64,000 nt of DNA, taken from NCBI GenBank assembly GCA_965240325.2, contig OZ251226.1:1674001-1738000 (forward strand), read 5' to 3'. Below, piece by piece: positions 9,856-30,793 of this stretch. Made by a program: the position numbers and the translations under genes. The stretch comes from Rebecca billardiae RCC1528. Lineage: Eukaryota; Protista; Haptophyta. The notes beneath the pieces were generated by a model, which was not told the origin of the DNA, ran no database searches, and worked only from the letters and a program-made list of their open reading frames with translations. Each line of letters opens with the position of its first letter. The first letter of the stretch is position 1.

Positions 9856-12800
9856 ATGTTCATCTACCTGTCGAAGAAGGTGAGCCTGCGCGTGGCTCTC
9901 GCCGGTGCACGAGTGCACTGCATGGCGCCCGCTCGTGCCCTGCCGTGCGCCGCCGACTCGCCGATCCTGTGCGCCCGCGCGCGATACGCCGCGCTCGCCT
10001 CTTGCCCCCGCGCTCGGCGCAGATCGCGATCCCGAACAATGTGCGGCTCAAGTCGCTGTCGTGGAACGGCGAGCAGGGCTGGATCGCGTGCGGTGGCGAG
10101 AACGGCATGCTCAAGGTGCTCAAGCTCGACTCTGGGAAGCCCGCCGAGAAGCAGAAGGGCCTGGCGGCGCCGAGCAACCTCTCGATGAACCAGACGCTCG
10201 AGGGGCACAATGGCTCCGTGATGTGCGTCACGTGGAACGAGGGGTATCGGAAGCTCACCACCTCCGATCAGTACGGGCTGATCATCGTCTGGATGCTGCA
10301 CAAGGGCATGTGGTTCGAGGAGATGATCAACAACCGCAACATCTCGACCGTGCGCGACATGAAGTGGGCGCGCGACGGCCAGCGCATCTGCATCGCGTAC
10401 GAGGACGGTGCGTGCGCGGCTGCGCGGAGGCGTCCGGCGCCCCGCGGCGCGGAGGGCTCTTCGCCCGCGCCCGCGCACGCCGGCGCGCGCTGACCGCGCC
10501 ACACGCCGCGGCCCCGCCCGCTGCTCCGCGGCGCGCAGGCCACGTGATCGTCGGCTCGGTCGATGGCAACCGGCTGTGGGGCAAGGAGCTCAAGCTCGAG
10601 CTGTGCTTGCTCGAGTGGTCGCCGGACGGGCGCAACCTGCTCTTCGCCACGCTCGACCACAAGGTGCAGATCTACGACTCCGCCGGCAACTACATCGCCA
10701 AGATGGGCCTGCACACGGAGGACAAGGTCCCGATCGTCGGGCTGGAGTGGTGCGCGCGCGCCGCGCGCAGCCGGGGGCGTCCGTGCGCGCCGCCCTCGCG
10801 CTCGCGCACGCGTGCGCACGCGGCGCAGGGGGCGGGGCGCGGGCGGCACGGCGAGCACGCGGCGCGGCGCCTCGCGCCGCCGCGGGCGTCGGCGTCCGCA
10901 CGCCGACCGCGCCCCGCGCGATCTGGCGCGGCGGCGCTCGGCGCGCAGGTTCGACACTTCGGCGGGCGTGGACGAGCAGGGGCAGCCAGCGCTCGCCATC
11001 TGCTTCGCCAACGGGCTGCTGCAGCTGATGCGGCACGAGAGCGACGACCGGCCGGTGGTGGTGGACACGGGGATGGCGGCGGTCAAGCTGCAGTGGAACA
11101 CGAGCGGCACCGTCGTCGTCGTCGCGGGCAACCACGTCTCCGTCTCGAGCGCCAACGAGCGCCGCGAGGTGGCGATGATGCAGTTCTTCTCTCCACACGG
11201 CCACCACCTGCGCACGCTCAAGGTGCCGGGCTCGTCGGTGGCGGCGCTCTCGTTCGAGGGCACGTCGCTGCGCATCGCGCTGGCGGTCGACTCGTTCATC
11301 TACTTCGCCAACATCCGGCCCGACTACAAGTGGGGCTACTTCGGCTCGACCGTCGTGTGCGCGTACCCGAAGATGGACCGCGCGGACACGGCGGTTCTTT
11401 TCCTCGACACGCGCACGGGCGAGCGCGTCACCAAGTTCGTCAAGAAGCTGCTGCACGTGGCGGCGTGCTCGGACAACTGCGCGCTGGTGACGCAGTCGTC
11501 GGAGCAGGCCGCGCCGTACTACATCATCCTGTGCAACGCGCTCGGCTCGCCCGTCGACTCGAAGTACATCGACATCCAGCCGAAGGTGTCGACGCTGACC
11601 AACCACCACTTTGTCGCCGCGTCCGCCGAGCAGGTGTACGTGTGGCAGTACCGCACGCTCACCGCCAAGCTCACGTCGGTCTCGGCGGCGGGCTCGTCGC
11701 TGCGGCGGAAGGAGGGGCGCGAGCAGGCGTTCCACATCGACGACCTCGCCTCCGCCGCCGGGCTGGGCGAGCAGCCCCTCGGCGCGGTCGACAAGGACCT
11801 CGCGCGGCTGCCGTCGCAGCGCAAGACGACGGACCCAATCATCGCGCTGTGCGCGACCGAGCGCGCGCTCTTCATCGCGCGCGAGTCGGGCGTGCTGCTC
11901 AAGTGCTCGCTGCCGCACGTGGCGCTGGAGCAGACGTACCGGCTGCGCGCGCGGCCGCAGCGCATGGCCGTGAACTGCAACGCCACGCGCCTCGCCTTCA
12001 TCGACTCGAACGGCGTGCTCGGTCTGTTCTCGCTCGAGCGCGCGACCGACGGCTCGGACGGCTGGGGCGAGCACCTGCCGTTCGAGCGCAAGGACGCGTG
12101 GGACTTCAAGTGGTCGTCGGACAACCCGGAGCTGTTCGCGATGATGGAGAAGACGCGGATGTACATCTTCCGCGGCCTCGAGCCCGAGGAGCCCGTCCTC
12201 TCCTCCGCGTACCTGTGCGACTTCTCCGACCTCGAGATCACGGCCGTGCTTCTGGACGAGCTGGTGAACGAGCCGGAGGCGCTGAGCAAAGAGCTGGTGC
12301 TGCGCTTCGACACCAAGTCGCTGCGCGACACGCGCGAGCTGCTGGCGAAGGTGAGCGTGAACGAGGCGTACTCGTTCGTGGAGGACAACCCGCACCCGCG
12401 GCTCTGGCGGCTGCTCGCCGAGTCCGCGCTGCGCTCGCGCGACTTTGCGGTCGCGGACAAGGCGTTCGTGCGCTGCGCTGACTACACGGGCATCCAGTTT
12501 GTGAAGCGGCTCAAGCTGCTCGACGACGAGCGCATGCAGGACGCGGAGGTGCACGCGTTCTACGGCCGCTTCGAGGAGGCGGAGAAGATCTACCTCGAGA
12601 TGGACCGGCGCGACCTCGCGCTCGACCTGCGCTCACGCCTCGGCGACTGGTTCCGCGTCGTGCAGCTCATCCAGCAGGGCGGCGCGGGCGACGACTCGAT
12701 GCTCACCAACGCTTGGGACTCGATCGGCGACTACTACGCCGAGCGGCTGCGCCCGGCGAAGGCGGCGCAGAACTACGCGCAGTCGAAGAACGCGAAGGGG

Positions 12801-14219
12801 CTGGTGTCGTGCTACTACGCGCTCGAGGACTACGTCGGCCTCGAGAAGCTCATCCACGCGCTGCCCGACTCGTCGCCGCTGCTGCGCGAGATCGGCGACA
12901 AGTTCGTCACGGTCGGGCTCGCCGAGCAGGCGACGAGCGCGTACACTAAGCTGGGCGATGTGCAGGCGGCCGTCAAGGCGTGCACCGAGCTGAACCAGTG
13001 GTCGACGGCCGTGGCGCTGGCGGAGCAGCACCAGCTGCCCGAGATCGAGAAGGTGCTCACGCAGTACGCGCGACACCTCCTCGACGAGAAGAAGATCATG
13101 ACCGCCGTCGAGCTGTACCGGAAGGCGGGCCACTCGACCGAGGCGGCGAAGCTGCTCACCGGGCTCGCGCGTGACTCGGCGGCCGCGCACGCGCCGCCGC
13201 TGCGGATCAAGAAGCTGTACGTGCTCGCCGCGCTGCAGGTGGAGCAGTTCCGCAAGAAGGCGCTGGACTCGACGATGACGGGCGGGCAGCACACCACCGC
13301 GCAGACGCTCGCCGGCCTCATGAAGGACGACGCGACGACGGGCGCGGACCGCTCGCTCGACTCTGCGTGGCGCGGCGCGGAGGTGCGCCGCGCGCACCGC
13401 GCGCGTGCGCGTCGGCGCGCACGCGCGCGGCGGCTCAGCGCGCCTCCGGACGTCCACCCGCGCCGCCCGCCCTCGCGCAGGCGTACCACTTCCTCTGCCT
13501 CGCGCAGCGCCAGCTGTACGACGGGTACGTCGACGCGGCGATGCGCACCGCGCTGCGGCTGCGCGAGTACGAGGCGGTGCTGGACGCGCAGGAGATCTAC
13601 TCGCTGATCGCGCTCACTGCCTTCTACGCCAAGTTTTACGGGCAGGTGTCGCGCGCGCTGATCAAGCTCGAGGCGCTCGAGCTGCCGCCGGAGCAGCACG
13701 AGGCGTTCGAGCAGCTCGCGCTCTCGATCTTCACGCGCTTCTCGCCCACCGACCCGAGCGTGCGCCGATACGCATGCCCCAGCTGCGACGCGGTGGTGAA
13801 CGACTGGTGCGCGCGCGTGCGTGCGCGCGAGCGTGCGCGCGAGCGTGCGGTGCGTGGGCGTGCGCGCGCATGCGCGCGCGCGCGTGGACCGTGTGCTCAC
13901 GTGCGCTCGCGCGGCGCGGCACGCACGCCGGCGCAGGTTCGCGAGCTGTGGCGAGTGCGGCACGCACTTCCCGGCGTGCATCGTGACCGGCCGCGCGCTC
14001 CTCGAGACGCGCAGCTACTGGATGTGCCGCGTGTGCAAGCATCGCGCATACGAGAACGAGATGCAAGACAGGCGCCACTGCCCGCTCTGCCACCACGGTA
14101 TCGGCGCGCGCGGCGGCGTCGCGGGCGCGTCAGAATCGTCGATGCAGCCCGTGGCCGGCGGAGCAGCCGCAGCGGCAGCGGCTCCGCGCCGACGCAGCAA
14201 CGACATGGGGTCCTACTGA
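9856..14219 (+). CDS. WDR35: WD repeat-containing protein 35 / IFT121 (IFT-A); 6 exons 9856-9879, 10023-10407, 10539-10749, 10949-13382, 13481-13806, 13937-14219
   Basis: [112 protein letters not shown]-terminal Zn finger [14 protein letters not shown]; five GT-AG introns restore frame. Confidence 0.95.
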
Positions 14220-16642: not shown

Positions 16643-16999
16643 CGTGCCGTTTTCTGTCGACGCGTTCAATCCCAACACAAACACGATGGCGGCTTCGGCC
16701 GGCCAACCTTCCGTCAAGATTCGGCGAGTCGACGGTTGATACACATAGTACTTTTTCATAAAGTACCCCCATACAATACTTTACCCGTCGTCAGCATTCA
16801 TACTTTACCATCACATTGTCTATGGGGGTAAGTGGTCGTACATCTGCGTCGGCCGAGGAAGCCGCTTTTCGATTTTCGATAACAGCAGCTGCCTCTAAAT
16901 AATGAACCGTGCCGGTGGGGAGCCTGGCCAAGCCCCGACGGGCGCGGGCTCGCGGTAGGTAGCTAGACCACGTCAACCGCTGCCACCACCCTCGCGCGC

Positions 17000-19900
17000 A
17001 TGGATGAGCACGAGCGGAGGGCGCTGCCGCGACGACGATGGGCGCGCCACTGCGCGCTCGCGCTGCTGCTCGCGGCGCGCCTCGCGCCGTGCGCCGCGGG
17101 CGCCTCGGACTGGGTCGATCCCGACACGCCCGAGGACAAGCGCTCCAGGGTGATTGACGGGGTGAAGTACGAGCTCGTCATGTCTGACGAGTTCGAGGTG
17201 GCGGGGCGCACGTTCGACGACGGGCACGACTCGATCTGGACGGCGATCGTGGGCTCGCCCACCACCAACGAGCAGGTGAACGACTACAACCCGGCGAACG
17301 TGTACACGGAGGGCGGCAAGCTCGTGATCGAGACGACGGTGGAGGCGCTCGGCTCGACGGCTCCTCGGCCGTACCAGACGGCGATGATCCAGAGCTGGGA
17401 CAAGTTCTGCTTCACCGAGGGCTTCGTCGAGGTCTCCGCCCAGCTGCCGGGCCGCTCGACGCAGGAGGGGCTGTGGCCGGCCTTCTGGATGTTTGGCAAC
17501 CTCGGGCGCGCCGCGTATCCCGACACGACGAACCGGCTTTGGCCGTTCATTACGGACAGCTGCCCGGCGCCGGAGCACGCGCGCGCCAACCAGAAGGGCA
17601 CGTGGGAGCTCGACAGCTGCGACGGCCAGCAGGCGCGCGGCGCGCCCGAGATCGACATCATCGAGGCGATGCCCGGCACGTACGTGTACGACTTTGCCGA
17701 CAAGGTCCGGTCGGGCGCGTGCCCGCCGGTCGAGCAGTCGTGGATCGATCGCACGCGCGTGTCGCTGCCGATGGTGGCGCAGTCGCTGCAGGCGGCGCCC
17801 GGGCTGCCGCACGACGCGGTCGAGCGGCCGATCCTCGGCTGCATGCCCAACGCGGACGGCCGCCGCGAGCACTCCTACTACCCGGAGCTGTGGCCGACCG
17901 CCCAGAACTACGGCCCGATCTACGCCGACGGAATCAACATCACGCTCAACTACGAGTTCTACGGCGATGCTTTCAGCAGCCCCGCGGCGGCGCAGCCGAA
18001 CGGCGAGCCGATGCACACGGACGCCTTCTCGGCGCTGTACAGCCTCCAGTCCACCCACTGGGACGCGCAGCACGCGTACCAGTGCGAGTGGGTCGGCGGC
18101 GATCAGGGGCGCGTGCGCTTCTCGATCGACGACGAGTTTCGGTTCAACGTGCCCGCGAGCGTCGTCGCGGCGGAGCGGCGCGTCACGTTCGCCGACGCCG
18201 AGGGCGAGCAGATCATGGACGGGCGGAAGATCCCCGACGAGCCGATGTACCTCATCCTCAACGTCGACCTCTCCCCCAAGTGGGGCTGGAACTTCTGCGA
18301 CCCGGACGAGTGCGACTGCTGCACCGACTGCCGCCGCACCGAGTGCACGACGTGCATGCAGCGCGACGCGGCGTCGGGCGAGCTCGTGAACACGCGGCAG
18401 TGGCTCGCCGAGCTGTGCGAGATGCTGCCCTCCAAGTACGAGGTGGAGTACGTGCGCGTGTACCAGCGCGAGGGCGCGACCAACCTCGGGTGCGACACGG
18501 CGGAGCGGCCGACCACCGAGTACATCCGCTCGAGGCGCGAGCGGTACACGGACGACGGCACGGCGGACGCGGAGCCGCTGCAGCCGGTGCGGCCGGGCGG
18601 CGCGCCGTGCGGCGAGGGGGCGGGCAGGTGCAGCCCGCACGGCCGCTGCGTCGACGGCTCGGCCGGGCCGGACGGCGGCCTGCCGCCGCGCGCGCGCTGC
18701 GTGTGCGACGAGGGCTGGACGGGCCCGCGCTGCCGCTCGCGCGCGCTCGGCGCGGCGCGCACGTGCGCTCAGCTCTCGGCGGGATCGATGGATCTGCCGC
18801 CGCCGCTCGGCGGAGCGCTCTCGGCCAACGGCACCGGCGACGGCGGCGACGGCGCGGAGGCGTCCGCGGCGTGGTCGGCGGAGGCCGTGCGCGCGCAGGT
18901 GGAGGCGGACACCCAGTGCGTCGTGCTCGCCGAGCACGGCGTGCTCCAGGTCGAGAGCGTGCTGTCGCAGCTGTGCGCGCGCGCGAACGGCACCGCCGCG
19001 GAGGCAGCGTGCGCGAGCGTGCTGCGCGCGCGCGGCGAGTTTTGGGCGTGCTCGGTGCGCCAGCGGGCGAACCACGTGCTCCGCGTCTGGGCGGAGGAGG
19101 TGAGCGGCGGGACGGAGTGCTGCCACCTGCTGCTCGCCGACGGCTCGCTGCGCTGCCGCACGATCGGCCCGCCGCCGTGGCCGCTGCTCGCCGCCGCGTG
19201 CGCGCTCGCACTGTGCGCGCTCGCGTGCATTGGGCCGTTTGCTCTGAAGCGCGCGCGCGCCGCCGCCGCCGCGCGCCGCGCGCGCAAGGCGGCGCCGCCG
19301 CGCCGCTCCTCGTCTCGCGGCGCGAGGCGGGGGTCGACGCTCGGCCGGCGATTCTCCGCCACGCAGCGGCTGCGCGCCGTCGTCGCGCCCGCCATCACGC
19401 TGATCAGCGAGGAGGACGAGCAGGAGGAGGCGCACGGCGCGCACGGCTCGGCCGGCGGCGGCGGCGTCGGCGGCGGCGGCGGCGACGACTCGCGCGACTC
19501 TCGGTCAAGCGGCGCGAGCAGCGGCGGCGCGGCGGACGGCGCCGCCGCGCGCGCGCAGCTCGTGTCCGAGTCGGCGTGCCTCGCCGTCGCGCCGCGCGCC
19601 TCGATCTCCAACGCGGGCGTGCAGCTGCTGCTCGAGCTGTTCGAGCACTATGCGCGCGTGTTTGGTTTTCAGACCGCGTCGGTGCAGGCGCAGTATTTCC
19701 ACCTGCTGCAGCTGTGGGCGGCGCAGACGGCGGCGCTGGGCGACGAGCGCGCGGCGGCGGCGATGCTGCACAGCATCATGTTCGCCTCGTTCGAGCGCTG
19801 GCTCGAGGTCGCGTCCGGACTCCTCTCCTTCGAGCGGCTCGCCGGGCGGCAGGACACGATGATGCGCGGCAAGCCGTCGCACGCGCAGCGGCTGCACGAG

Positions 19901-22900
19901 ATGGCGCTCTACCTCTGCCTGTGGAGCGAGGCGGGGAACGTGCGCTTCGTGCCCGAGGCGCTGTGCTTCTTCTTCGAGTGCGCGCGCAACCACGCCGCGG
20001 ACAAGCCCGCGCCCGCCTCGACGCCGGGCGATCGGCTCAACTGGGCGGCCGAGGACAGCAGCGCGGCCGCCATTTCCGCGCCCGCGCCGCTCGCCCGGGC
20101 CGAGCCTGGCGCCTCCGGCGCGCCGAGTCCGCCGCCGCTCGTCTCCGAGGGCGACTACCTGCGGCGGTACGTGCAGCCGCTGTACGACTTCATCTTCTCG
20201 CGCTCGTTCAAGGGCCTCGACGCGCGCGGCCGGCCGGCGGAGCACCCGTGGGGCAAGGCGGAGAGCAAGGCGGGCACGCGGGAGAACTACGACGATTGGA
20301 ACGAGGTCTTCTGGACGCCCACGCACGTCGGCCGGATCGTGACGAAGGAGGGGCGGCGGATCCTCGACCTGCCGATGCGCGAGCGCTGGTCCGCGCTCGC
20401 GGCCGTGGATTGGGAGGCCTCGATGAAGGGGTGCAAGCGCCACTTCGAGCGGCTGGCGTGGTACGGCCTGTTCGTCTCGTACGCGCGAATCTTCTCATTC
20501 CACGGTGAGAAGGAGCGCCGCCGCGTTTCGCGCGCGCGTCGACGCGTCGACTGGCACGCGGCCGCGCGCGCGCGCGCGCAGCCGCGCGCGCTCGGCCCCT
20601 GCGCGCGCACCCGCGCTCACGCGCCCGTGCGCCGCGCTGCGCCTCCGACGCGCCTCCGCCCTCGCCCCTGGCAGCCGCGCTCTTCGCGCTCTCGCTCTTC
20701 GCGCTGCACTGGCTCGGGCTGTGGCACGGCGAGATCGGCGCGGCAAACGTGGGCACGCGCGGGCCGACGACCGAGCTCGGCCTGCACGCGACGCTGCTGC
20801 TGCCCGCCGCGGTGCAGCTCGCCGCGGACCTGGCGAAGCTGGGCGTGAAGCCGCGCGCGACGTTCGTCGGGACCCTCCTCGAGCCGGAGAAGTCGGCGCC
20901 GCTGCTGCTACAGCTCGCTCTTTTTGGCCTCGCGGCGTGGCTGCGCGAAAGCCTTGCGCTGCGCTGGCTGTACCTCGTCGTCTCGACGGTCGTCGCGGCG
21001 CGCGCCGCGGTCGGCGTGCGCCATCTCGTGCGCAAGATGCCGCACTTCGACTCGCACGTGCGCCGCGCGGGCGTCGAGACCGCGCGCCAGATGGCGATCT
21101 TCTGGGGCGTCGTGCTCGGCACCAAGCTCGCAGCCGAGACGCTTGTGAGCAACCGCGCGGGCGCGATCGCGTCGGCTCGGCTGGACGCGCTCTTCCCGCT
21201 CTGGCCGCTGATGGAGGAGCCCGCGCTCGCGTGGCACCTGCGCGCCTCGCCCATCTTCGCGCTGCGCGCGGTGCACGGCGCACTCGTCTGGGGCTGCACG
21301 ATCGGCGCGCACTACACTTCCACGTACTATTGGTACGTGCTCGGCGTGGCGGTGTACGGCACGGTGCGCGGGCTGCTGCTGCTGCGCGGCGAGTCGCAGG
21401 CGGGCGGCCACTCGGCTTATCACGGCCGCGGCTCCAGGCTCGGCGCCGGCGGCGACGAGATCGGGTACGCGGAGGTGTCGACGGACGAGGCGAAGCCGAG
21501 CGCCGTCGCGGCCGCCGCCACCGCCGACGCCGCCGACGCCGACGCCGACAACGAGCCCGACGTGCCGCGCGTGCGCGCGCTGTGCGACATCCCCGCAGCG
21601 TTTGTCGCGCAGGTGTTTGCGAGCGACTCGGTCGAGCAGCGCGCGGTGCGGCTCGGCCTCCCGCCGCCCGTCGGCGCGACCGCCGGCGCGGACGGGGGCG
21701 CGGCGGCGGAGCTCGGCGCAGCGCGCGCCGCCGCGCGGCCGGCGGCGCGGCTCGAGCCCGCGCCCGCGCCCCGCCTGCCCCTTGGCCGCGAGCGCGCACA
21801 GGCGAGCGCGCGGCTGCCGCCGGGCGTCGAGCGGCGCTGGGCGCACGTGTGGCACGAGATCTGCCTCGACATGCACAACAACGACCTGATCTCGAGCGCG
21901 GAGCTGGCGAAGCTCAAGTACGGCGGCGTCGAGCACGAGGAGGCCGAGCTCGTGCCGCCGGCCATCTTCCGAGCCGCGCCGCGCCGCGAGGCGGACGTGC
22001 TGCCGCGCTCCAGGGAGGCGCAGCGACGGATCCAGACGCTGCGCCAGTCGCTCTGCATGAAGATGCCGCGCCCCGCCGCCGTCGAGGCGCTTCCTTCCTT
22101 CACCGTGCTCATCCCGCACTACGGCGAGACGATCGTCACCTCGGAGAAGGAGCTGCTCGAGCCGCCGGCCGGCGGCAACGGCGAGACCACCGGCCCGCTG
22201 ATCTCGATGCTGATGGAGTACTCGACAGACGAGCTGAACAACATGCGCGCGCGCATCGGCGAGCAGGAGTGGCGGCTCACGTGGGCGATCATCACCGAGC
22301 GGCTCGCGAGCAAGGGGCAGAAGGCCGCGGCGAAGCAGGTCGCCGGCCTCGCCGCGGTCGCGCGCCGCCAGCTGCGCGGCCTTCAGAAGGAGCTGCACAA
22401 GCGAAGCTCGGGGCACCGGCGCGCCACCGCCGGCACGTCGGCCACCAGCGCCGCGGCGGAGAGTCGCGACGCCTCTGCTGAGCTGGCCGAGCCCGCCGCG
22501 CCGACGATCCGCGCGTCGACGGCCGCGCGCGTCGCGGAGGCGCTCGGGGGCGCCGCGCAGGCGATGGAGGCGACGGGCGAGGAGGAGGACGACGAGCAGA
22601 GCGACGCGGGCAGCTCGATCCACTGGTCGGACGAGGACGAGGGCGAGGGCGAGGCGTCGTTGGACGAGGAGCTCTGGGACGGGCTGCTCGACGACTCCGA
22701 CCCGGAGGAGGGCGGCGGCGCCGGCGGCGCCAACGCCGGGCTCTCGCAGGTGCTCGTGCCGCTGCGCAAGTGGGCGTCGATGCGCTCGCAGTCGCTGTAC
22801 CGCACGGTGCGCGGCATGATGGCGTACAGCCGCGCGCTCGACGTGCTGCTGCGCGTGCAGCGACCCGACCTCTCGGCGGAGGCGCGCGAGGAGCTGGTCG

Positions 22901-25900
22901 CGACCAAGTTCTCGTGCGTCGTCTCGATGCAGCGGTACGCCGACTTCTCGCCCGAGGAGCTGGAGGGCGCCGAGCTGATGCTCAAGGAGTTCCCGAGGCT
23001 CAAGATCGCGTACATCGACACCGAGCCCGAGCCGGGCGGCACGCTGGGCAAGCGCTTCTACTCGTGCCTCGTCGACGGGATGGGGAAGCCGAGCGCGGAC
23101 GGCAAGCGCACGCCGCGCTACCGCGTGCAGCTGCCCGGCCACCCGATCCTCGGCGACGGGAAGGGCGACAACCAGAACCACGCGCTCATCTTCTCCAAGG
23201 GGCGGTTCCTGCAGACGATCGACTCGAACCAGGAGGGCTACCTCGAGGAGGCGCTCAAGATCTGCAACGCGCTCGCCGAGTTCGACGCGGCGCAGCCGGC
23301 GGGCGGCGGCGTCGCGGCGGGCGGCGGCGGCACGATGCCGTGGCGCGTCGCGATCGTCGGCTTCCGCGAGCACATCTACTCGACGGAGAGCGGCGCTGTC
23401 GCGCACTTTGCCGGCTCGTCCGAGCTCGTGTTCGGCACGATCACGCAGCGCACGATGGACAAGCCGCTGCTCTCGCGCCAGTACTACGGCCACCCCGACA
23501 TCATGGAGAAGCTGACGATGATGGCGCAGGGCGGCGTGTCCAAGGCGACCAAGGGGCTCAACCTCTCGGAGGACGTGTTCGCCGGGATGGACCTGATGCT
23601 GCGCGGCGGCGCCGTCGTGCACCGGGAGTACATGCAGGTGGGCAAGGGGCGCGAGATGACGTTTGTCGGCCACCTGATGTTCGTCGCCAAGCTCGCGCGC
23701 GGCTGCGCGCAGGTGACCCTCACGCGGCAGAGCTACCGCCTCGGCACGCGGCTCCGCTTCCTCCGCCTCCTCGGCTTCTACTACGGCCACGTCGGCCACT
23801 ACTTCACGCCGCTGATGCTCGAGTACATGATGTGGGCGTACGCGTACCTCTTCCTCTTCTTCTGCGCGAGCGACGTGCCGAGCGGCTCGGCGGCGGCGGG
23901 CGCGGCGTTCGGCCCGGCGGGCGGCGGCACGGGCGTGTACTCGAACATCGCCAAGGCCGTGCTCGACTCGCAGTTTGGCGCGCTCGCCGTCATGTTCCTC
24001 GCCGTGCAGACGCTGCCGCTGCTGCTGCAGCTGTGGCTCGCGCACGGGTTGCTGCGCGCGCTCGCGCAGCTGCTCGGCCAGCTGCTCTCGTGCTCGCTCC
24101 TCTTCTACGGCTTCCAGAACCAGGTGACCGGCCAGTCGTTCCGCGGCGAGATCTCGGTTGGCGGCGCCGCGTACATCCCGACGGGACGCTCGATGGCCGC
24201 GGCGCGGAACGCGCTGCCGACGCTCTTCCGAGCGTTCGCGCAGCAGACGATGCGCCCGGCGACCGACATCCTGGTGATGATCTCGCTCGCGCTGCTCACG
24301 CGGCCGGCCTCGCTGCCCGCGCCCATGTACTGGGTCGAGATCGGCCTCGCTATCTCGAGCTTCCTCTACGCGCCGTTCATCTTCAACCCGAGGCACTTTG
24401 CGCCGCGCTCGATCGCGCGCGATGACCTCGGCGGCGCCGCGCGCTGGCTGCTCTCAGATGCAGCCGACGGCTGGCGGCCGTGGCACCTGAGCGAGCTGAG
24501 CGCGCTCGGCGCTCGCTCGCCCGCGCGGTTCGTCGCGTGCTCGCGCCGCGCGCTCGGCTCGCTCGCGCTCGGCCTGCTCGCGATGGCCGTGATGGCACCC
24601 GACAGCTCGCGGCGCGAGGCGGCGTGGACCGCGCTCGAGTTCTTCCTTGCCACGACGCCCGCCGCGCCGCTGCTGCTCGCCTCGCCCGTCGCCGCGCTGG
24701 GCTTCGCGCTCTCGCGGTGCGCGAGCGGCTCGCCCAAGGCACTGCGCGCCGCGCGCGCGCTCTCGTCGATCGCGGTCGCGCTCGCGCTCGGCGCGGCGCA
24801 CGCCGGCGAGGTGTGCGCACACGCCTGGTATGGCTCGACAGCGCAGGCGCTTGAAGGCCGCTGGCGCGCGGGCGCGTGGCCGACGCCGCGTTCGCAGCCG
24901 CTCACCGTCCCGCAGCTCGCCGTGATCGGCGCGGCCAAGTACATGGGGGTGCACGCGTGCACCTCTGGCGTCGCCGTGCTCGCGGCCGTGCTCGGCGGCC
25001 GCGCCAAGAACGCCGCGGCCAAGGCCAAGGCGGCTCAGAAGGCGCGTAAGGGCGGGCAGCCGATGCCACCGCCACCGGCGGCCGCGGCCACCACCGAGCA
25101 GGCAGCGGCGGCGGCACTGGCGCCGCCCACAGCCGCGGCGCCGGCGGCGGCGCCCGCGGCGTCGTCCGCCAGCGGCACGCCGCCGCTCGGGTCGCGGGGT
25201 GGCAGCGGCACGCCGCCACTGGTGGCCAGCCCGCCTCTCCTCGGCGCACGCCTCGGCGTGGGCGGCGCCGAGGGCGGTGGCGGCGCCAGCGCGGACGGCG
25301 GCCTAGGCACGGTGGAGGAGGAGCGCGGGAGCCGCACCAGCGGCAACAGCCGTGCGAGCAACACGAGCATGCCGCACTCGGAGCCGCACTCGTCCGGCAG
25401 GCTGGAGGGCTCGTCGTCGATGCTGCTGCTGCCGCCCGGCGCCACGCCGGTGAGGAAGCCGAAGAAGGCGCTTGGCGGTGACGGCGCGCCTGCGGCGGCG
25501 GCCGCGCCGGGTGCGAGCTCGGACGCGACGCCCGGCGCCGCCGCCGACGGGCACAGCCCGAGCCACCTGGCGCCGAGTGGTGGGCCGCCGCGCCTGGACG
25601 TGTCCAGCCTCGAGCCCACGCCCTCCGAGGCGAGCTCCGCGCGCTCCTCGCGCAGCAACGCCAGCTTCATCTCGATCGCGAACTCGTGGCGCGGACTCAC
25701 GCCGCGCGTCGAGCCCGGGCGCCGCGCCGCGCGCGCCGACGCGGCGGACGGCGGCGCGGCGGGCGGCAAGGAGAAGGCGAAGAAGGCGGCGGCGACGAGC
25801 CTTGGCGAGGCGGTGCCCGCCGCGCTGCGCGACGCGCTGCTCGAGCTGCTCCTCGGCTACCGCCTGCTCGCCGACCTCTTCATCACGCTGCTGATCGCTC

Positions 25901-27639
25901 TGCCGTCACTCGCGCTGGCACTGCTGCCGGGCTGCAAGGCTCTGCACACGTACATGCTGCTGCGCGTGCGCCCGTCGGAGAACTACGAGAGCAAGGTGCA
26001 GGACATCACCAAGGCGCAGCGCTGGTCGTTCGCGCGCGCCTCGACGGCCGACGGCGGCTCTCCCACCCGCCGCACCGGCCGCCGCTCCGCGCGGCCGAGC
26101 GCCATGTCACGGCTCTTCGGCGGAGCGGGCGAGCTTGGCGCGCGCGCCGCGCGGCTCTCCACAATGATCGGTGGGCGCCTCTCGATGTGGGGCGGCGACG
26201 GCGACGCGGAGAGCGACGAGGACTCGGGGCGGCACGAGAGCACGCGCGCGTCCCAGGCCAACGGCAGGCTCAGCGTGTTTGGCCGCGGCGGCGGCTTCCG
26301 CGGCAGCACGCGCGGGAGCACTTCAGACGGCTCGAGCGCGGCGGCCACGCCGAGCGGCGCGTCCCGAAGCCGTTACAGCAGCCGTTTCAGCTCGCGCATG
26401 CTGTCGAGCCGAGCGAGCACCACCACGCCCTCGGGCGTGCCGCGCTTCCCGGGACGCTCGGACACGCCCGACGACGAGACGACGCCCGGCGGCGTGCCGC
26501 GCTTCCCCGCGCGCAGGAAGGGCTCCAGAGACGGCGGCGGCTCGCGCGTGTCCGTTTCCGCGCGCGTGAGCTCGGCTGGCGGGCCGATGGGCGGCTCGTC
26601 GACCACCACGCCCGGCGGGGTGCCGCGCTTCCCGTACCGGCCGAACCGGCCGAGCGACAAGGTGCGCGGGCCGCTGGGGCTGTGCCGCGGCAGGCCGGAG
26701 TGGGCATCGGCAGGCGGCGAGCCCGCGGGCGCCCGCCGCAGCGTGAGCGACCGCATGCGCAAGCCGTGCGGCGCAAGCGGCTCGTGGGCGGCGCCCCTCT
26801 CCGGTCAGCAGCAGCAGCAGCAGCCGGGCGAGGGGCGGGTGTCGGAGGTCAGGGAGGAGCAGTCGCCGAGCAAGTCCACGACGCCGTCGGCCCGCAAGGC
26901 GCGCGTGAGCTGGCTGAGCAACCTGGGCGGTGGCCCGACGATGCCGCCGCGCGAGCCGCCGCCGCCGCCCGCGCAGCCGCCGCAGCCGCCGCAGCCGCCG
27001 CAGCGCGAGCCGGCACGACAGCCGCCGCCGCCGCCTGCGCAACCGCCGCAGCCGCGGCAGGGCGAGACGGCGCCGCCACCCGAGCAGCCGCCGCAGTGGA
27101 AGCAGGGTGAGACGGTGCGGCTGACGCTGCCGCTGTTCGCGGCTGGCTTGGCGCGGCAGCCACAGACACAGCCGCAGCGGATGCAGCTGCCGCAGCCAGG
27201 CGCCGCGGCGGCGGGCGCGGCGCAGCCTCCGCCACTGCAGCAGCCGCCGCAGCCGCCACCGCTGCCGCCGCGGCCGGGCAGCTCGGGAGGCCCGCCGAAG
27301 CAGCTGCCGCCCATCTCCGTCCCCGGCGCGAGCGCGGCGGCCTGCACCGACTTGGAGCCGCCGCCCGCCCTACCAACGCCAACCCCCCCGGGGCCGAGCC
27401 CTCCGTGGCAGGCCAACCGGGTCCAGCCGCAAGGTGGCGCGTGTGCAGGGGGCTTGGCGCCCTCTGCCGCCACCGTGGCTTCCAAGGCCAAGGCGTTCAA
27501 GCCGCCGGTCGCTCGCTATTCGCCGCTGTACAAGCTCCGTAACCGGACCAGCTTGCCGCGGGACACGAAGAACCTTTCGGGCGCAAGCGTCTCGGGCGCA
27601 AGTGTCTCCACCATCGCGCTCTCAGACGAGGAGTCGTGA
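17000..27639 (+). CDS. Giant fusion: signal peptide + KRE6/SKN1-type GH16 + EGF-like + TM + FKS1 domain + GT48 1,3-beta-glucan synthase + low-complexity tail; exons 17000-20504 and 20675-27639 (~3489 aa)
   Basis: GH16/SKN1: WVDPDTP, LVMSDEF, QSWDKFCFTEG, GLWPAFWMFGNLGRA, RGAPEIDIIEA, IPDEPMYLILN, YVRVYQ. EGF: CVCDEGWTGPRC. FKS1 domain: FGFQ, ALYLCLWSEAGNVRFVPEALCFFF, NYDDWNEVFW. GT48: EAQRRI, PSFTVLIPHYGE, WASMRSQSLYRTVRGM, PILGDGKGDNQNH, QTIDSNQEGYLEE, GFREHI, YGHPD, GGVSKA..NLSEDVFAG, QVGKGRE, YIPTGR, APFIFNP. Phase-1 intron 20505-20674 joins the frames. Confidence 0.88.
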
Positions 27640-28199: not shown

Positions 28200-30793
28200 A
28201 TGCACCGGAGCGGGCAGCTGCGCTCTTCGGTGGGCACGCAGACGGTGCCCGCGGCCGCCGACAGCAACGAGGACCTCGCATACGAGCCGCCTCCCGTCGA
28301 CGACGACGTGGATGTAGCCTTCCTGGCGAGCCAGGCGCGCCGGCTCGCGACCTTCCGCGCAGAGTCGCGGCTGACGGACTTGGTGGTGTGCGTCGGGGCC
28401 GAGCGGTTCGCGTGCCACCGCCTCCACCTCTGCGCGGCGTCGAGCTTCTTCCGCGCCCTCTTCACCTCAGCGATGCGCGACGCGAGCAGCGAGTCGATCA
28501 CGCTCGAGGAGATTGCGCCGTCTGTGTTCGGCACGGTGCTCGAGTACGTGTACACGGGGCACTGCACGCTCACGGCGGACGACGTGGTGGACGTGCTCGC
28601 CGCCGCAGACCGCCTCGCCGTCATCGAGCTGCGCGAGCGCTGCACGCGCTTCCTGCAGCGCAACCTGACGGCGCAGAACGCGCTCGCAGCGTATGACGTC
28701 GCGTCGTCGCTCTCGATCACGCGGCTCAAGGAGTCGGCGCTGCGCGTGGCGCTGGAGCAGTTCGACGAGGTGGCCGCGAGTCCGTCGTTCGTCGACGTCC
28801 CCGCCGACTTCCTCAAGCAGCTCTTCGCCTCGGACGAGCTGCGCGCCGCCGAGGAGTGCGTGTTCCGCGCGCTGTCCGCTTGGTATCATCACCAGCTGGA
28901 CGAGAGGGTGGACGACGCGTCGGCGCTGCTGCAGCTGGTCAGGCTGCCGCTGTGCGAGCCGGCGTTCCTCGAGGTGTGCGCGCGTGCGCGCGCGCGCGCC
29001 GCGGTGCCTGCCTGGTGCTGAGCGCTCCCTTGCTCGCACCACGCGCGCGGCCGCGCGCCGCGCCGCGCGCCGCTGCGGTGCTCACGCGCCCCGCGCCCGC
29101 GCCGCGCGCGCCCGCGGCCGTGCGCCCGCAGGGCGTGGTGGAGAAGGACGGGCTGGGGCAGCTGCCGGTGTGCAAGGAGCTGCTGCTCGAGGCGTACTCT
29201 CACCTCAACCTCAGCGCGGCGATGCAGCGCGTGCAGCTCCACTGCGCGCCGCGCGCGCCCGCGGGGCGAGACTGGCTCCGAGAAGTCTTTGAGATGCTCG
29301 GCCCTCGCTCGGGCGAAGGGTATTGGGCTTCGACGTTCAAGGGGCACGGCGGCGGCGGCGGCGCGCGCGGCGTGGCGGTGCAGCCGGAGTCGCGCCGGCG
29401 GAGGCGGATGGCCGCGGCGGCCGACGTCTCGCCGCTCAGCCCGTCGCGCGGCCACGTGCGCACCATCAAGGCGCTGTGCGTCGACGAGGAGGCCGGTGCG
29501 CGCGCGCGCGCGCGAGTGCGCACGCGGACTGTGCGGTGCGACGCGTGCGGACGCGGACTGCGCGATGCGAGGCAGGCGGACGCGGCGTGCGCGATGCGAC
29601 GCGCGCGGCGTGCGCGAGCGCGCGCCGCGGCGTGTGCGCGGCGCGTGCGCGGCGTGTGCGCGCTCACGCGCCCACGCGCCGCCGCGCCCGCCGCCCCCCT
29701 TTGCACAGGCGTGTTGTACACCGGCTCTTGGGACCACACGGCGCGCAAGTGGGGGCTGCGCACGGGCGCGTGCCTACTCACATTCACCGGGCACAAGCAG
29801 GACGTGATCGGGATGCACCTGTGCCGCGAGCGCGCGCGGCTCTTCACGTGCGCGGACCGCGTGCGCTGCTGGTCCACGCTCGACGGCTCGTGCGTGCGCA
29901 TCTTCGGCACGAGCACGTTTTACTGCGCGGTCGCGGACGAGCGTGCGCTGTATGCAGCGCAGTACGACGGCCAGATCCTGCAGTTCGACCACCTGCCGGC
30001 GGAGGGCGGCTCGGAGGAGGAGGCGCGCGGCGGGTGCGCCGCGGCGGAGCTCGAGGTGCGCACGCCCGTGTGCGTGCTCACCGGACACGAGTCCGGTGTG
30101 ATGGGCTTCGATCTGCGAGGGGACCTCCTGGTGAGTGCGAGCATTGACTCGACGGCTAAGGCGTGGTCGCGCGCCACGGCCGAGTGCACGCAGACCTTCG
30201 TCGGGCACACCTCGCAGCTGCGCGCCGTGCAGCTCTGGCGAGACTCGGTGCTCACGGGCTCGTACGACCAGACCATCCGGCAGTGGGACCTCGAGTCCGG
30301 CGCGCAGCTGCGCCTGTTCGCGGGGCACACGGACGCTATCCGCGCGCTCGTGGTCGGCGTCGACCTGATGTCGTGCTACATGTGGAGCGCCTCGAGCGAC
30401 GGGACGGTCCGGCAGTGGGACCTCGAGTCCGGCGCGCAGGTGCTGCGGCTCTCGGCGCACGAGGAGTCCGTCTTCGCCCTCGCGCACGCCGACGGCGTGC
30501 TGTACACGGGCAGCGCGGACTGCACGGCCAAGCGCTTCGACGTGCACACGGGCAAATGCATTATGACATTCCCGAGGCGCGAGGGACCGCCGCACGGCGC
30601 CGCGAGCGGCGGCGGAGCCGTTGCGCCGGCAGGGCGCGCGCAGCCGGCGGCGGCCGCGCCGCCTGGCCCGGCCGCGGGAGCTGCGGCCGTTGCCGCGGCC
30701 GCGGCGGCCGCGCCGCCCCCGGGCGGCGGCTGGGCGCCGCAGGCCGTCGGCGGGCTCGCCGCGCTCGCCGGCGCGGGGCCGGCGGCGGGCTGA
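28200..30793 (+). CDS. BTB/POZ-BACK-WD40 protein; exons 28200-28973, 29132-29495, 29709-30793
   Basis: BTB: LTDLVVCVGAERFACHRLHLCAASSFFRALF, VLEYVYTG. BACK: SDELRAAEECVFRALSAW, LLQLVRLPL. Several GH...WD repeats (LYTGSWDHTARKW, TGSYDQTIRQWD); two GT-AG introns. Confidence 0.85.

Follow-up and report, generated by a model that had tools for sequence, protein, structure and literature searches.

The 64,000-nt stretch of the genome of Rebecca billardiae RCC1528 that was analyzed here (assembly GCA_965240325.2, contig OZ251226.1, positions 1,674,001-1,738,000; hereafter the window, whose numbering is used throughout) carries on its forward strand, at positions 17000-27639, what is very probably a genuine gene for a fusion protein, in which a Kre6/Skn1-type GH16 domain is followed in the same chain by a GT48-type 1,3-beta-glucan synthase. 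Two long forward-strand open reading frames (ORFs), 17000..20848 and 20749..27639, lie in different frames and are joined by a single intron into a model of 1168 + 1 + 2320 = 3489 codons. An earlier reading made from the sequence alone (the sequence-only reading) had likewise called one phase 1 intron and a frame of ~3489 residues, and the ORFs together with the GTGAG and CAG splice sites give exactly this length. The donor reads CAC G/GTGAG (intron start, 20505), the acceptor reads CCCTGGCAG/CC (intron end, 20674), and read-through of the intron would meet a stop at 20846-20848. The splice model is supported by a 2381-residue metagenome protein, P0001, whose homology breaks off after ...YARIFSFH, with which exon 1 closes, and is picked up again with LFALSLFA, only two residues into exon 2. 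By script count, 12 GT/AG pairs leave the frame open, and the fusion is unaffected by any of them; the junction of GH16 with the first synthase domain, FKS1_dom1, lies entirely within exon 1, as the sequence-only reading had pointed out, which makes the choice of splice sites irrelevant to it. The pair 20505/20581 was rejected because it would insert 31 Arg-rich residues that have no counterpart in the homologues, and donor 20474 and acceptors 20733 and 20775 were rejected because any pair that uses them would lose conserved residues. No second copy of the fusion gene was found in the 64-kb window.

The DNA of the window is ~75% GC, and the coding signal was followed as the GC content of third codon positions (GC3) in 300-nt windows. 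In frame, GC3 is 0.93-1.00 in every such segment of exon 1, the low-complexity linker included, and 0.85-1.00 in every segment of exon 2 as far as the stop, with a value of 0.60 directly after it. The intron is free of codon periodicity (GC of 0.77, 0.86, and 0.88 at the three codon positions), as are the flanks, where GC3 is 0.48-0.73, with values of ~0.5-0.65 in the 300 nt 5' of the ATG and in the sequence 3' of the stop. Thus, the coding signal begins at 17000, is interrupted only by the intron, and ends at 27639. From base composition alone, the chance of 360 linker codons remaining open is ~0.005. Two antisense ORFs of 823 and 1162 residues, at 16973-19444 (-) and 20908-24396 (-), overlap the fusion gene; as the GC3 pattern fits the forward strand, these ORFs are not genes but a side effect of the GC content of 75%.

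The homologues tell the same story across the junction. Residues 37-1168 of exon 1 align with P0001 in a single BLASTP stretch at 44% identity, and residues 28-1168 align, again in a single stretch, with P0002, a 2721-residue complete ORF from one MMETSP transcript, at 43% identity. Both stretches cross the GH16 domain, the EGF-like module, the membrane helix, the linker, and FKS1_dom1 without a break. Since the P0002 ORF comes from one transcript, the fusion sits on one mRNA in a relative.

The translations of exons 1 and 2 were searched separately. All the elements of the N-terminal half called by the sequence-only reading (a signal peptide, a GH16 domain with an intact EIDIIE motif, an EGF-like domain, and a membrane segment) were recovered, the signal peptide as a prediction, and the outcome that it had named as a refutation, an N-terminal region with no GH16/SKN1 match, is contradicted by the strong Pfam match listed in Table 1. 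The sequence begins with what looks like a cleavable signal sequence, and the fused homologues start in the same way, with a Met, a hydrophobic run, and the sequence (E)WVDPDTP. In a phmmer search against PDB, exon 1 alone matches GH16 laminarinases (E values down to 5e-9) and GSC2/FKS1 (3.5e-20). An AlphaFold2 model of residues 1-730, with a predicted local distance difference test (pLDDT) score of 82.8 and a predicted TM (pTM) score of 0.86, has the beta-jelly-roll fold of GH16, and its top Foldseek matches are GH16 laminarinases, i.e., endo-1,3-beta-glucanases (4dfs, 2vy0, and 3azx; probability 1.0, target TM scores of 0.73-0.81). The catalytic residues E217, D219, and E222 are invariant across 25 aligned homologues, and the cysteines of the EGF-like module are near-invariant in the homologue alignment (A1). 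The stalk that follows, for which no Pfam family match was found over residues 627-721, is modeled with confidence, 10-residue blocks over residues 641-720 averaging a pLDDT of 88-96. In hydropathy scans, exon 1 has a single membrane helix, at residues 729-747, and one helix occupies the equivalent position in P0001, P0002, P0004, P0111, P0114, and P0261. Directly after this helix comes an Arg/Lys run, KRARAAAAARRARK.

The C-terminal half is a complete FKS-type synthase. The sequence-only reading had described an FKS1 domain and a GT48 core with an intact SED motif, and this holds for both Pfam domains (E values of 1.2e-17 and 2.8e-167) and for the motif, S2133-E2134-D2135, which aligns with N1220-E1221-D1222 of yeast FKS1. 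Residues 1048-1168 of exon 1 align with residues 348-459 of FKS1, and in a phmmer comparison with the FKS1 structure (PDB 7XE4), exon 2 aligns with FKS1 residues 751-862 and 934-1511 at an E value of 2.6e-123, so that the N-terminal domain, the GT domain, and the C-terminal membrane region of FKS1 are covered collinearly. The UDP-glucose-binding and catalytic residues named for FKS1 are Y849, E851, K1082, N1085, D1102/N1104, E1221, and D1222 (PMC12715860). According to this alignment, every one of them is kept in the Rebecca protein, at positions Y482, E484, K829, N832, D849, N851, E965, and D966 of exon 2.

Table 1. Features of the GH16-GT48 fusion gene of Rebecca billardiae (aa, amino acid residues)
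Feature	Position in window	Strand	Details
Exon 1	17000..20504	+	1168 codons plus first base of split codon; ORF list, translation
Signal-peptide-like N-terminus (aa 1-35)	17000..17104	+	Predicted; hydrophobic stretch aa 18-36
Kre6/Skn1-type GH16 (aa 36-520)	17105..18559	+	Pfam PF03935 SKN1_KRE6_Sbg1, 204.9 bits (cut-off 30), E value 2.3e-60
GH16 catalytic motif E217-I-D219-I-I-E222	17648..17665	+	ExDxxE
EGF-like module (aa 542-579)	18623..18736	+	Pfam EGF_Teneurin, 3.1e-06, 27.6 bits (cut-off 24.3)
Helical Cys-containing stalk (aa 627-721)	18878..19162	+	Four helices and a hairpin in AlphaFold2 model
Single membrane helix (aa 729-747)	19184..19240	+	Hydropathy scans; followed by KRARAAAAARRARK
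Low-complexity linker (aa 748-880)	19241..19639	+	Predicted cytosolic; Ala/Gly/Arg/Ser-rich; GC3 0.93-0.96
FKS1_dom1 (aa 964-1114)	19889..20341	+	Pfam PF14288, 1.2e-17, 64.6 bits; predicted cytosolic N-terminal domain of synthase
Intron	20505..20674	+	170 nt, phase 1, GT-AG, GTGAG...CAG; split codon g/cc
Exon 2	20675..27639	+	2 bases ending split codon, 2320 codons, stop
GT48 catalytic region and subsequent membrane helices (exon-2 aa 389-1259)	21841..24453	+	Pfam PF02364 Glucan_synthase, 2.8e-167, 558.9 bits
PHYGET	22114..22131	+	FKS1 Y849 and E851 (UDP-glucose binding); alignment, roles from PMC12715860
GDGKGDNQNH and IDSNQ	23152..23232	+	FKS1 K1082, N1085, and D1102-A-N1104 motif (here D-S-N)
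LSEDVFAG	23563..23586	+	FKS1 catalytic E1221-D1222
Ala/Gly/Ser/Pro-rich insert of ~258 residues (exon-2 aa 1460-1717)	25054..25827	+	GC3 0.87-0.94
Conserved last membrane segment (exon-2 aa 1698-1782)	25768..26022	+	Aligns with P0001 2284-2365; from aa 1718, with P0002 2350-2414
Pro/Ser/Gly-rich C-terminal tail, 538 residues	26023..27636	+	GC3 0.85-0.95

Two low-complexity segments set the end of the Rebecca protein apart. The first is an insert that P0002 does not have, the BLASTP coordinates of the latter being contiguous (2349, then 2350) where the insert stands; given its GC3, the insert is probably coding and not an in-frame intron. The second is the C-terminal tail, for which no homologue match was found. 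This disordered tail contains three copies of a TP(S/G)GVPRFP motif within 70 residues (starting at 26434, 26491, and 26617; span, 26434-26634). The motif was not found in the homologues checked, and GVPRFP may be a short docking motif. The genes on either side have no evident tie to glucan metabolism: upstream, at 10563-13607 (+), lies a WDR35/IFT121-like gene of intraflagellar transport (second beta-propeller, 3.9e-113), and downstream, at 28200-29021 (+), one for a BTB-BACK protein.

The same Pfam domain order (SKN1, FKS1_dom1, Glucan_synthase) is found in P0001, P0004, P0111, and P0114, all of which are metagenome or Logan proteins, in the MMETSP transcripts, P0002 among them, and in the oomycete protein P0200. 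P0031, P0117, P0124, P0172, and P0196 are fragments that span the junction. For either half, the best relatives that carry an organism name are from Prymnesium parvum. In the genome of this haptophyte (GCA_041296205.1, CM083869.1), GH16, FKS1_dom1, and GT48 lie collinearly on one strand within 6.4 kb (locus L001, 10001-16431). The gene model AB1Y20_005495 (954 residues) carries SKN1 and FKS1_dom1, and the GT48 core comes next on the same strand. The public annotation cuts this locus into models of 954 and 148 residues, so fused synthases are probably undercounted in haptophyte proteomes. Prymnesium parvum has an unfused GT48 as well (P0005), and a search of the 10 kb upstream of it found no unannotated GH16 domain.

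Several relatives display further domains. In P0003 (filed in EukProt as Picozoa sp. SAG31), the same domain order is combined with a cyclic-nucleotide-binding domain, which in both P0003 and P0196 lies between FKS1_dom1 and the GT48 core; this hints at control of glucan synthesis by cyclic nucleotides in these relatives. Contamination is a possibility for P0003, whose source is a single-cell genome. In the same clades, P0009 (JGI metagenome, 2169 residues) is a GT48 synthase with PDZ domains, and in P0110 (MMETSP, 1057 residues) a stand-alone Kre6-type GH16 domain is followed by a PAN domain.

Literature searches for an algal GH16-GT48 fusion found no description of one, and PMC7965971 handles GT48 and GH16_2 as separate enzymes. 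In the literature searched, the fusion of the Rebecca lineage is thus undescribed for haptophyte-like algae; the domain order itself is known from oomycetes, some of which fuse a GH16 domain to a glucan synthase (PMC13612389, 2026). The statement of the sequence-only reading that the 1,3-synthase and the KRE6-like enzymes are separate proteins in fungi and diatoms agrees with the literature, and its caveat that similar fusions might already be known was well placed, the order being on record for oomycetes and found here in Aphanomyces stellatus, marine protists, and Prymnesium parvum. The marine-protist and Prymnesium sequences also contradict the claim in PMC13612389 that this architecture is limited to oomycetes. 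Morris et al. 2009, which PMC13612389 cites for the oomycete fusion, contains, in its main text and the supplements searched, none of the terms “glucan,” “SKN1,” PF03935, and PF02364.

The oomycete protein P0200, annotated as 1,3-beta-glucan synthase in Aphanomyces stellatus (UniRef100_A0A485KNF9, 2493 residues; SKN1 at 55-437, FKS1_dom1 at 772-858, Glucan_synthase at 1650-2200), resembles the Rebecca protein in having, in this order, a signal-like N-terminus, an SKN1/KRE6 GH16 domain with the ExDxxE motif, a membrane connector, FKS1_dom1, and Glucan_synthase, with the same implied topology. However, the two proteins are only 29-30% identical, and the connector of P0200 consists of about five hydrophobic segments directly after GH16, with no EGF-like module or stalk, in contrast to the EGF-like module, stalk, and single helix of the Rebecca protein. 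The relationship was further addressed with a GT48 tree of 47 rows and a GH16 tree of 71 rows, both of them “quick” and unrooted and with a single oomycete sequence. In the GT48 tree, the closest partners of the Rebecca sequence are P0002 and P0001 (99%), and a clade with Prymnesium among its members joins next, whereas P0200 stands beside the plant callose synthases, several fully supported branches away. A tree constrained to unite Rebecca, P0001, P0002, and P0200 is worse by 342 log-likelihood units and is rejected in the approximately unbiased (AU) test (p 1.35e-39), the tested group having been fixed after the tree was seen. In the GH16 tree, all six marine fusions fall into one 15-row clade (99%) with stand-alone dinoflagellate proteins, and P0200 lies outside that clade, on the side that holds proteins whose GH16 domain is C-terminal (presumably Kre6 of the fungal type). 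Both trees, the AU test, and the differing connectors suggest that the fusions of the Rebecca lineage and of the oomycetes probably arose separately.

Among known systems, the first ~750 residues of the Rebecca protein have the layout of PhTGS, the algal Kre6 homologue of Pleurochrysis haptonemofera, and of Phaeodactylum TGS1/2. PhTGS, which is required for storage glucan, consists of a signal peptide, SKN1, a membrane helix, and a cytosolic tail, and the diatom TGS proteins are separate from the synthase (PMC10543733). The Rebecca protein differs from these in having an EGF-like module and a helical stalk before the helix and in that its “cytosolic tail” is a whole FKS-type synthase of ~2,700 residues. 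In Saccharomyces cerevisiae, FKS1 and Kre6/Skn1, to which the two halves are related (the GT48 core by the 7XE4 alignment and the kept active-site residues, the GH16 domain by its membership in SKN1_KRE6_Sbg1), are products of separate genes, and the DAN motif of FKS1 is DSN in the Rebecca protein. The latter also does not share the type II topology of yeast Kre6, with its N-terminal cytosolic tail and C-terminal GH16 domain; the Rebecca GH16 domain lies in the N-terminal part, preceded by a signal-like sequence and followed by the membrane helix, as in the algal TGS proteins (PMC10543733). A functional parallel is provided by Bgs3-Ghs2, a synthase-remodeler complex of Schizosaccharomyces pombe (PMC13612389), where a GT48 beta-1,3-glucan synthase and a membrane-anchored GH16 protein are obligate partners in making branched glucan. 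Bgs3 and Ghs2, however, are two noncovalently associated polypeptides that serve a wall glucan, whereas the Rebecca protein is a single chain in an alga.

FKS1 has its N-terminus in the cytosol and extrudes its product across the membrane to the opposite side (PMC12715860). In the Rebecca protein, the signal sequence, together with the positively charged run behind the helix, would place GH16 on the lumenal or outer face and the N-terminus of the synthase in the cytosol, as in yeast FKS1, and the two halves of the protein would be topologically compatible. The GH16 cleft, tethered by the stalk of ~200 residues, would then sit near the exit of the synthase channel. The synthase would polymerize beta-1,3-glucan from cytosolic UDP-glucose, and the tethered GH16 domain would cut and transfer the emerging chain in cis, thereby introducing beta-1,6 branches and/or setting chain length; the product would most likely be a vacuolar storage glucan. 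The sequence-only reading, which had proposed such a polymerize-and-branch machine with storage glucan as its plausible product, is partly supported: the single polypeptide, the two intact catalytic centers, and a coherent topology bear it out, whereas branching and storage remain proposals. Cis cutting and transfer are proposed by analogy with the Bgs3-Ghs2 complex, PhTGS, and diatom TGS, and we regard such remodeling of the nascent chain as an evenly balanced proposition. Storage glucan is somewhat favored over surface glucan as the product. In the explanation taken as a whole, our confidence is about three in four.

Several points weigh against this explanation. The biochemical reaction of Kre6-family domains is debated, and since the closest solved structures are those of laminarinase hydrolases, plain hydrolysis is possible. 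The mechanism, the localization, and the topology are all read from sequence features. A single mRNA for the Rebecca gene, although well supported, is predicted from sequence signals and homologues, and the 258-residue insert and the 538-residue tail, which have no homologues, could in principle hide further in-frame introns.

Two rival explanations accept the fusion. In one, the GH16 domain is an endo-glucanase that releases or sizes the nascent chain or mobilizes stored glucan, with no role in 1,6-branching. The nearest solved folds are indeed endo-1,3-beta-glucanases, the reaction of Kre6 itself is biochemically unsettled, and storage laminarins are short chains, which need a chain-terminating step. 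Nevertheless, we consider this version unlikely, as this is a domain of the Kre6/Skn1 subfamily (PF03935), whose members are needed for the synthesis of glucan and not for its breakdown, knock-down of PhTGS lowers glucan (PMC10543733), Ghs2 promotes branched glucan (PMC13612389), and cutting need not exclude transfer in retaining GH16 enzymes.

The other concerns the product: the enzyme, sited at the plasma membrane or Golgi, might make a beta-glucan of the cell surface or of scales in place of a vacuolar storage glucan. The GT48 enzymes of fungi, oomycetes, and plants make wall glucans, and modules such as the EGF-like one and the Cys-rich stalk are typically those of extracellular proteins, but the diatom and haptophyte TGS proteins that have the same N-terminal layout are tied to vacuolar storage glucan (PMC10543733), which leaves the surface role a rather doubtful one.

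Finally, it is highly improbable that two adjacent genes, one TGS-like (signal peptide, GH16, membrane helix, and tail) and one for an FKS-type synthase, have been misread as one because stops are rare at 75% GC: long spurious ORFs do exist here, such as the antisense ones, stand-alone TGS-like proteins are known from haptophytes, diatoms, and dinoflagellates, and for the Rebecca locus itself the case for one mRNA is made from sequence, but with no stop in frame the upstream gene could end only through an unseen frame-shifting intron, the GC3 of the linker stays at or above 0.93 throughout against 0.48-0.73 in the flanks and a flat 0.77-0.88 in the intron, P0001 and the transcript-derived P0002 are each collinear over the junction in one alignment, and at least four more clusters (P0117, P0124, P0172, and P0196) cross it.

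The preferred reading, a synthase that carries its own remodeling domain, has several implications. At least one public annotation, that of Prymnesium parvum, splits such a gene, so annotation-based surveys may miss the fusion. Tentatively, and with the odds somewhat against it, the single-chain make-and-branch glucan enzymes could form an old family with a wide distribution among haptophytes and other marine protists, including the metagenome clades and the sequence filed under Picozoa, that was invented independently of the oomycete fusion. The storage glucan of haptophytes is a large marine carbon pool, and a synthase and remodeler encoded by one gene would be a handy target for structural, knock-out, and linkage work. 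If GH16 acts in cis at the channel exit, such a family would account for the building of the beta-1,6-rich storage glucans of haptophytes without a dedicated 1,6-synthase, and, together with the yeast Bgs3-Ghs2 complex, GT48-Kre6 coupling would appear as a general rule of beta-glucan synthesis. The role of Kre6-type GH16 proteins in the formation of branched beta-glucan is unsettled; a covalent fusion that has apparently been reinvented in two distant lineages, alongside the yeast complex, is strong genetic evidence that both activities share the nascent chain.

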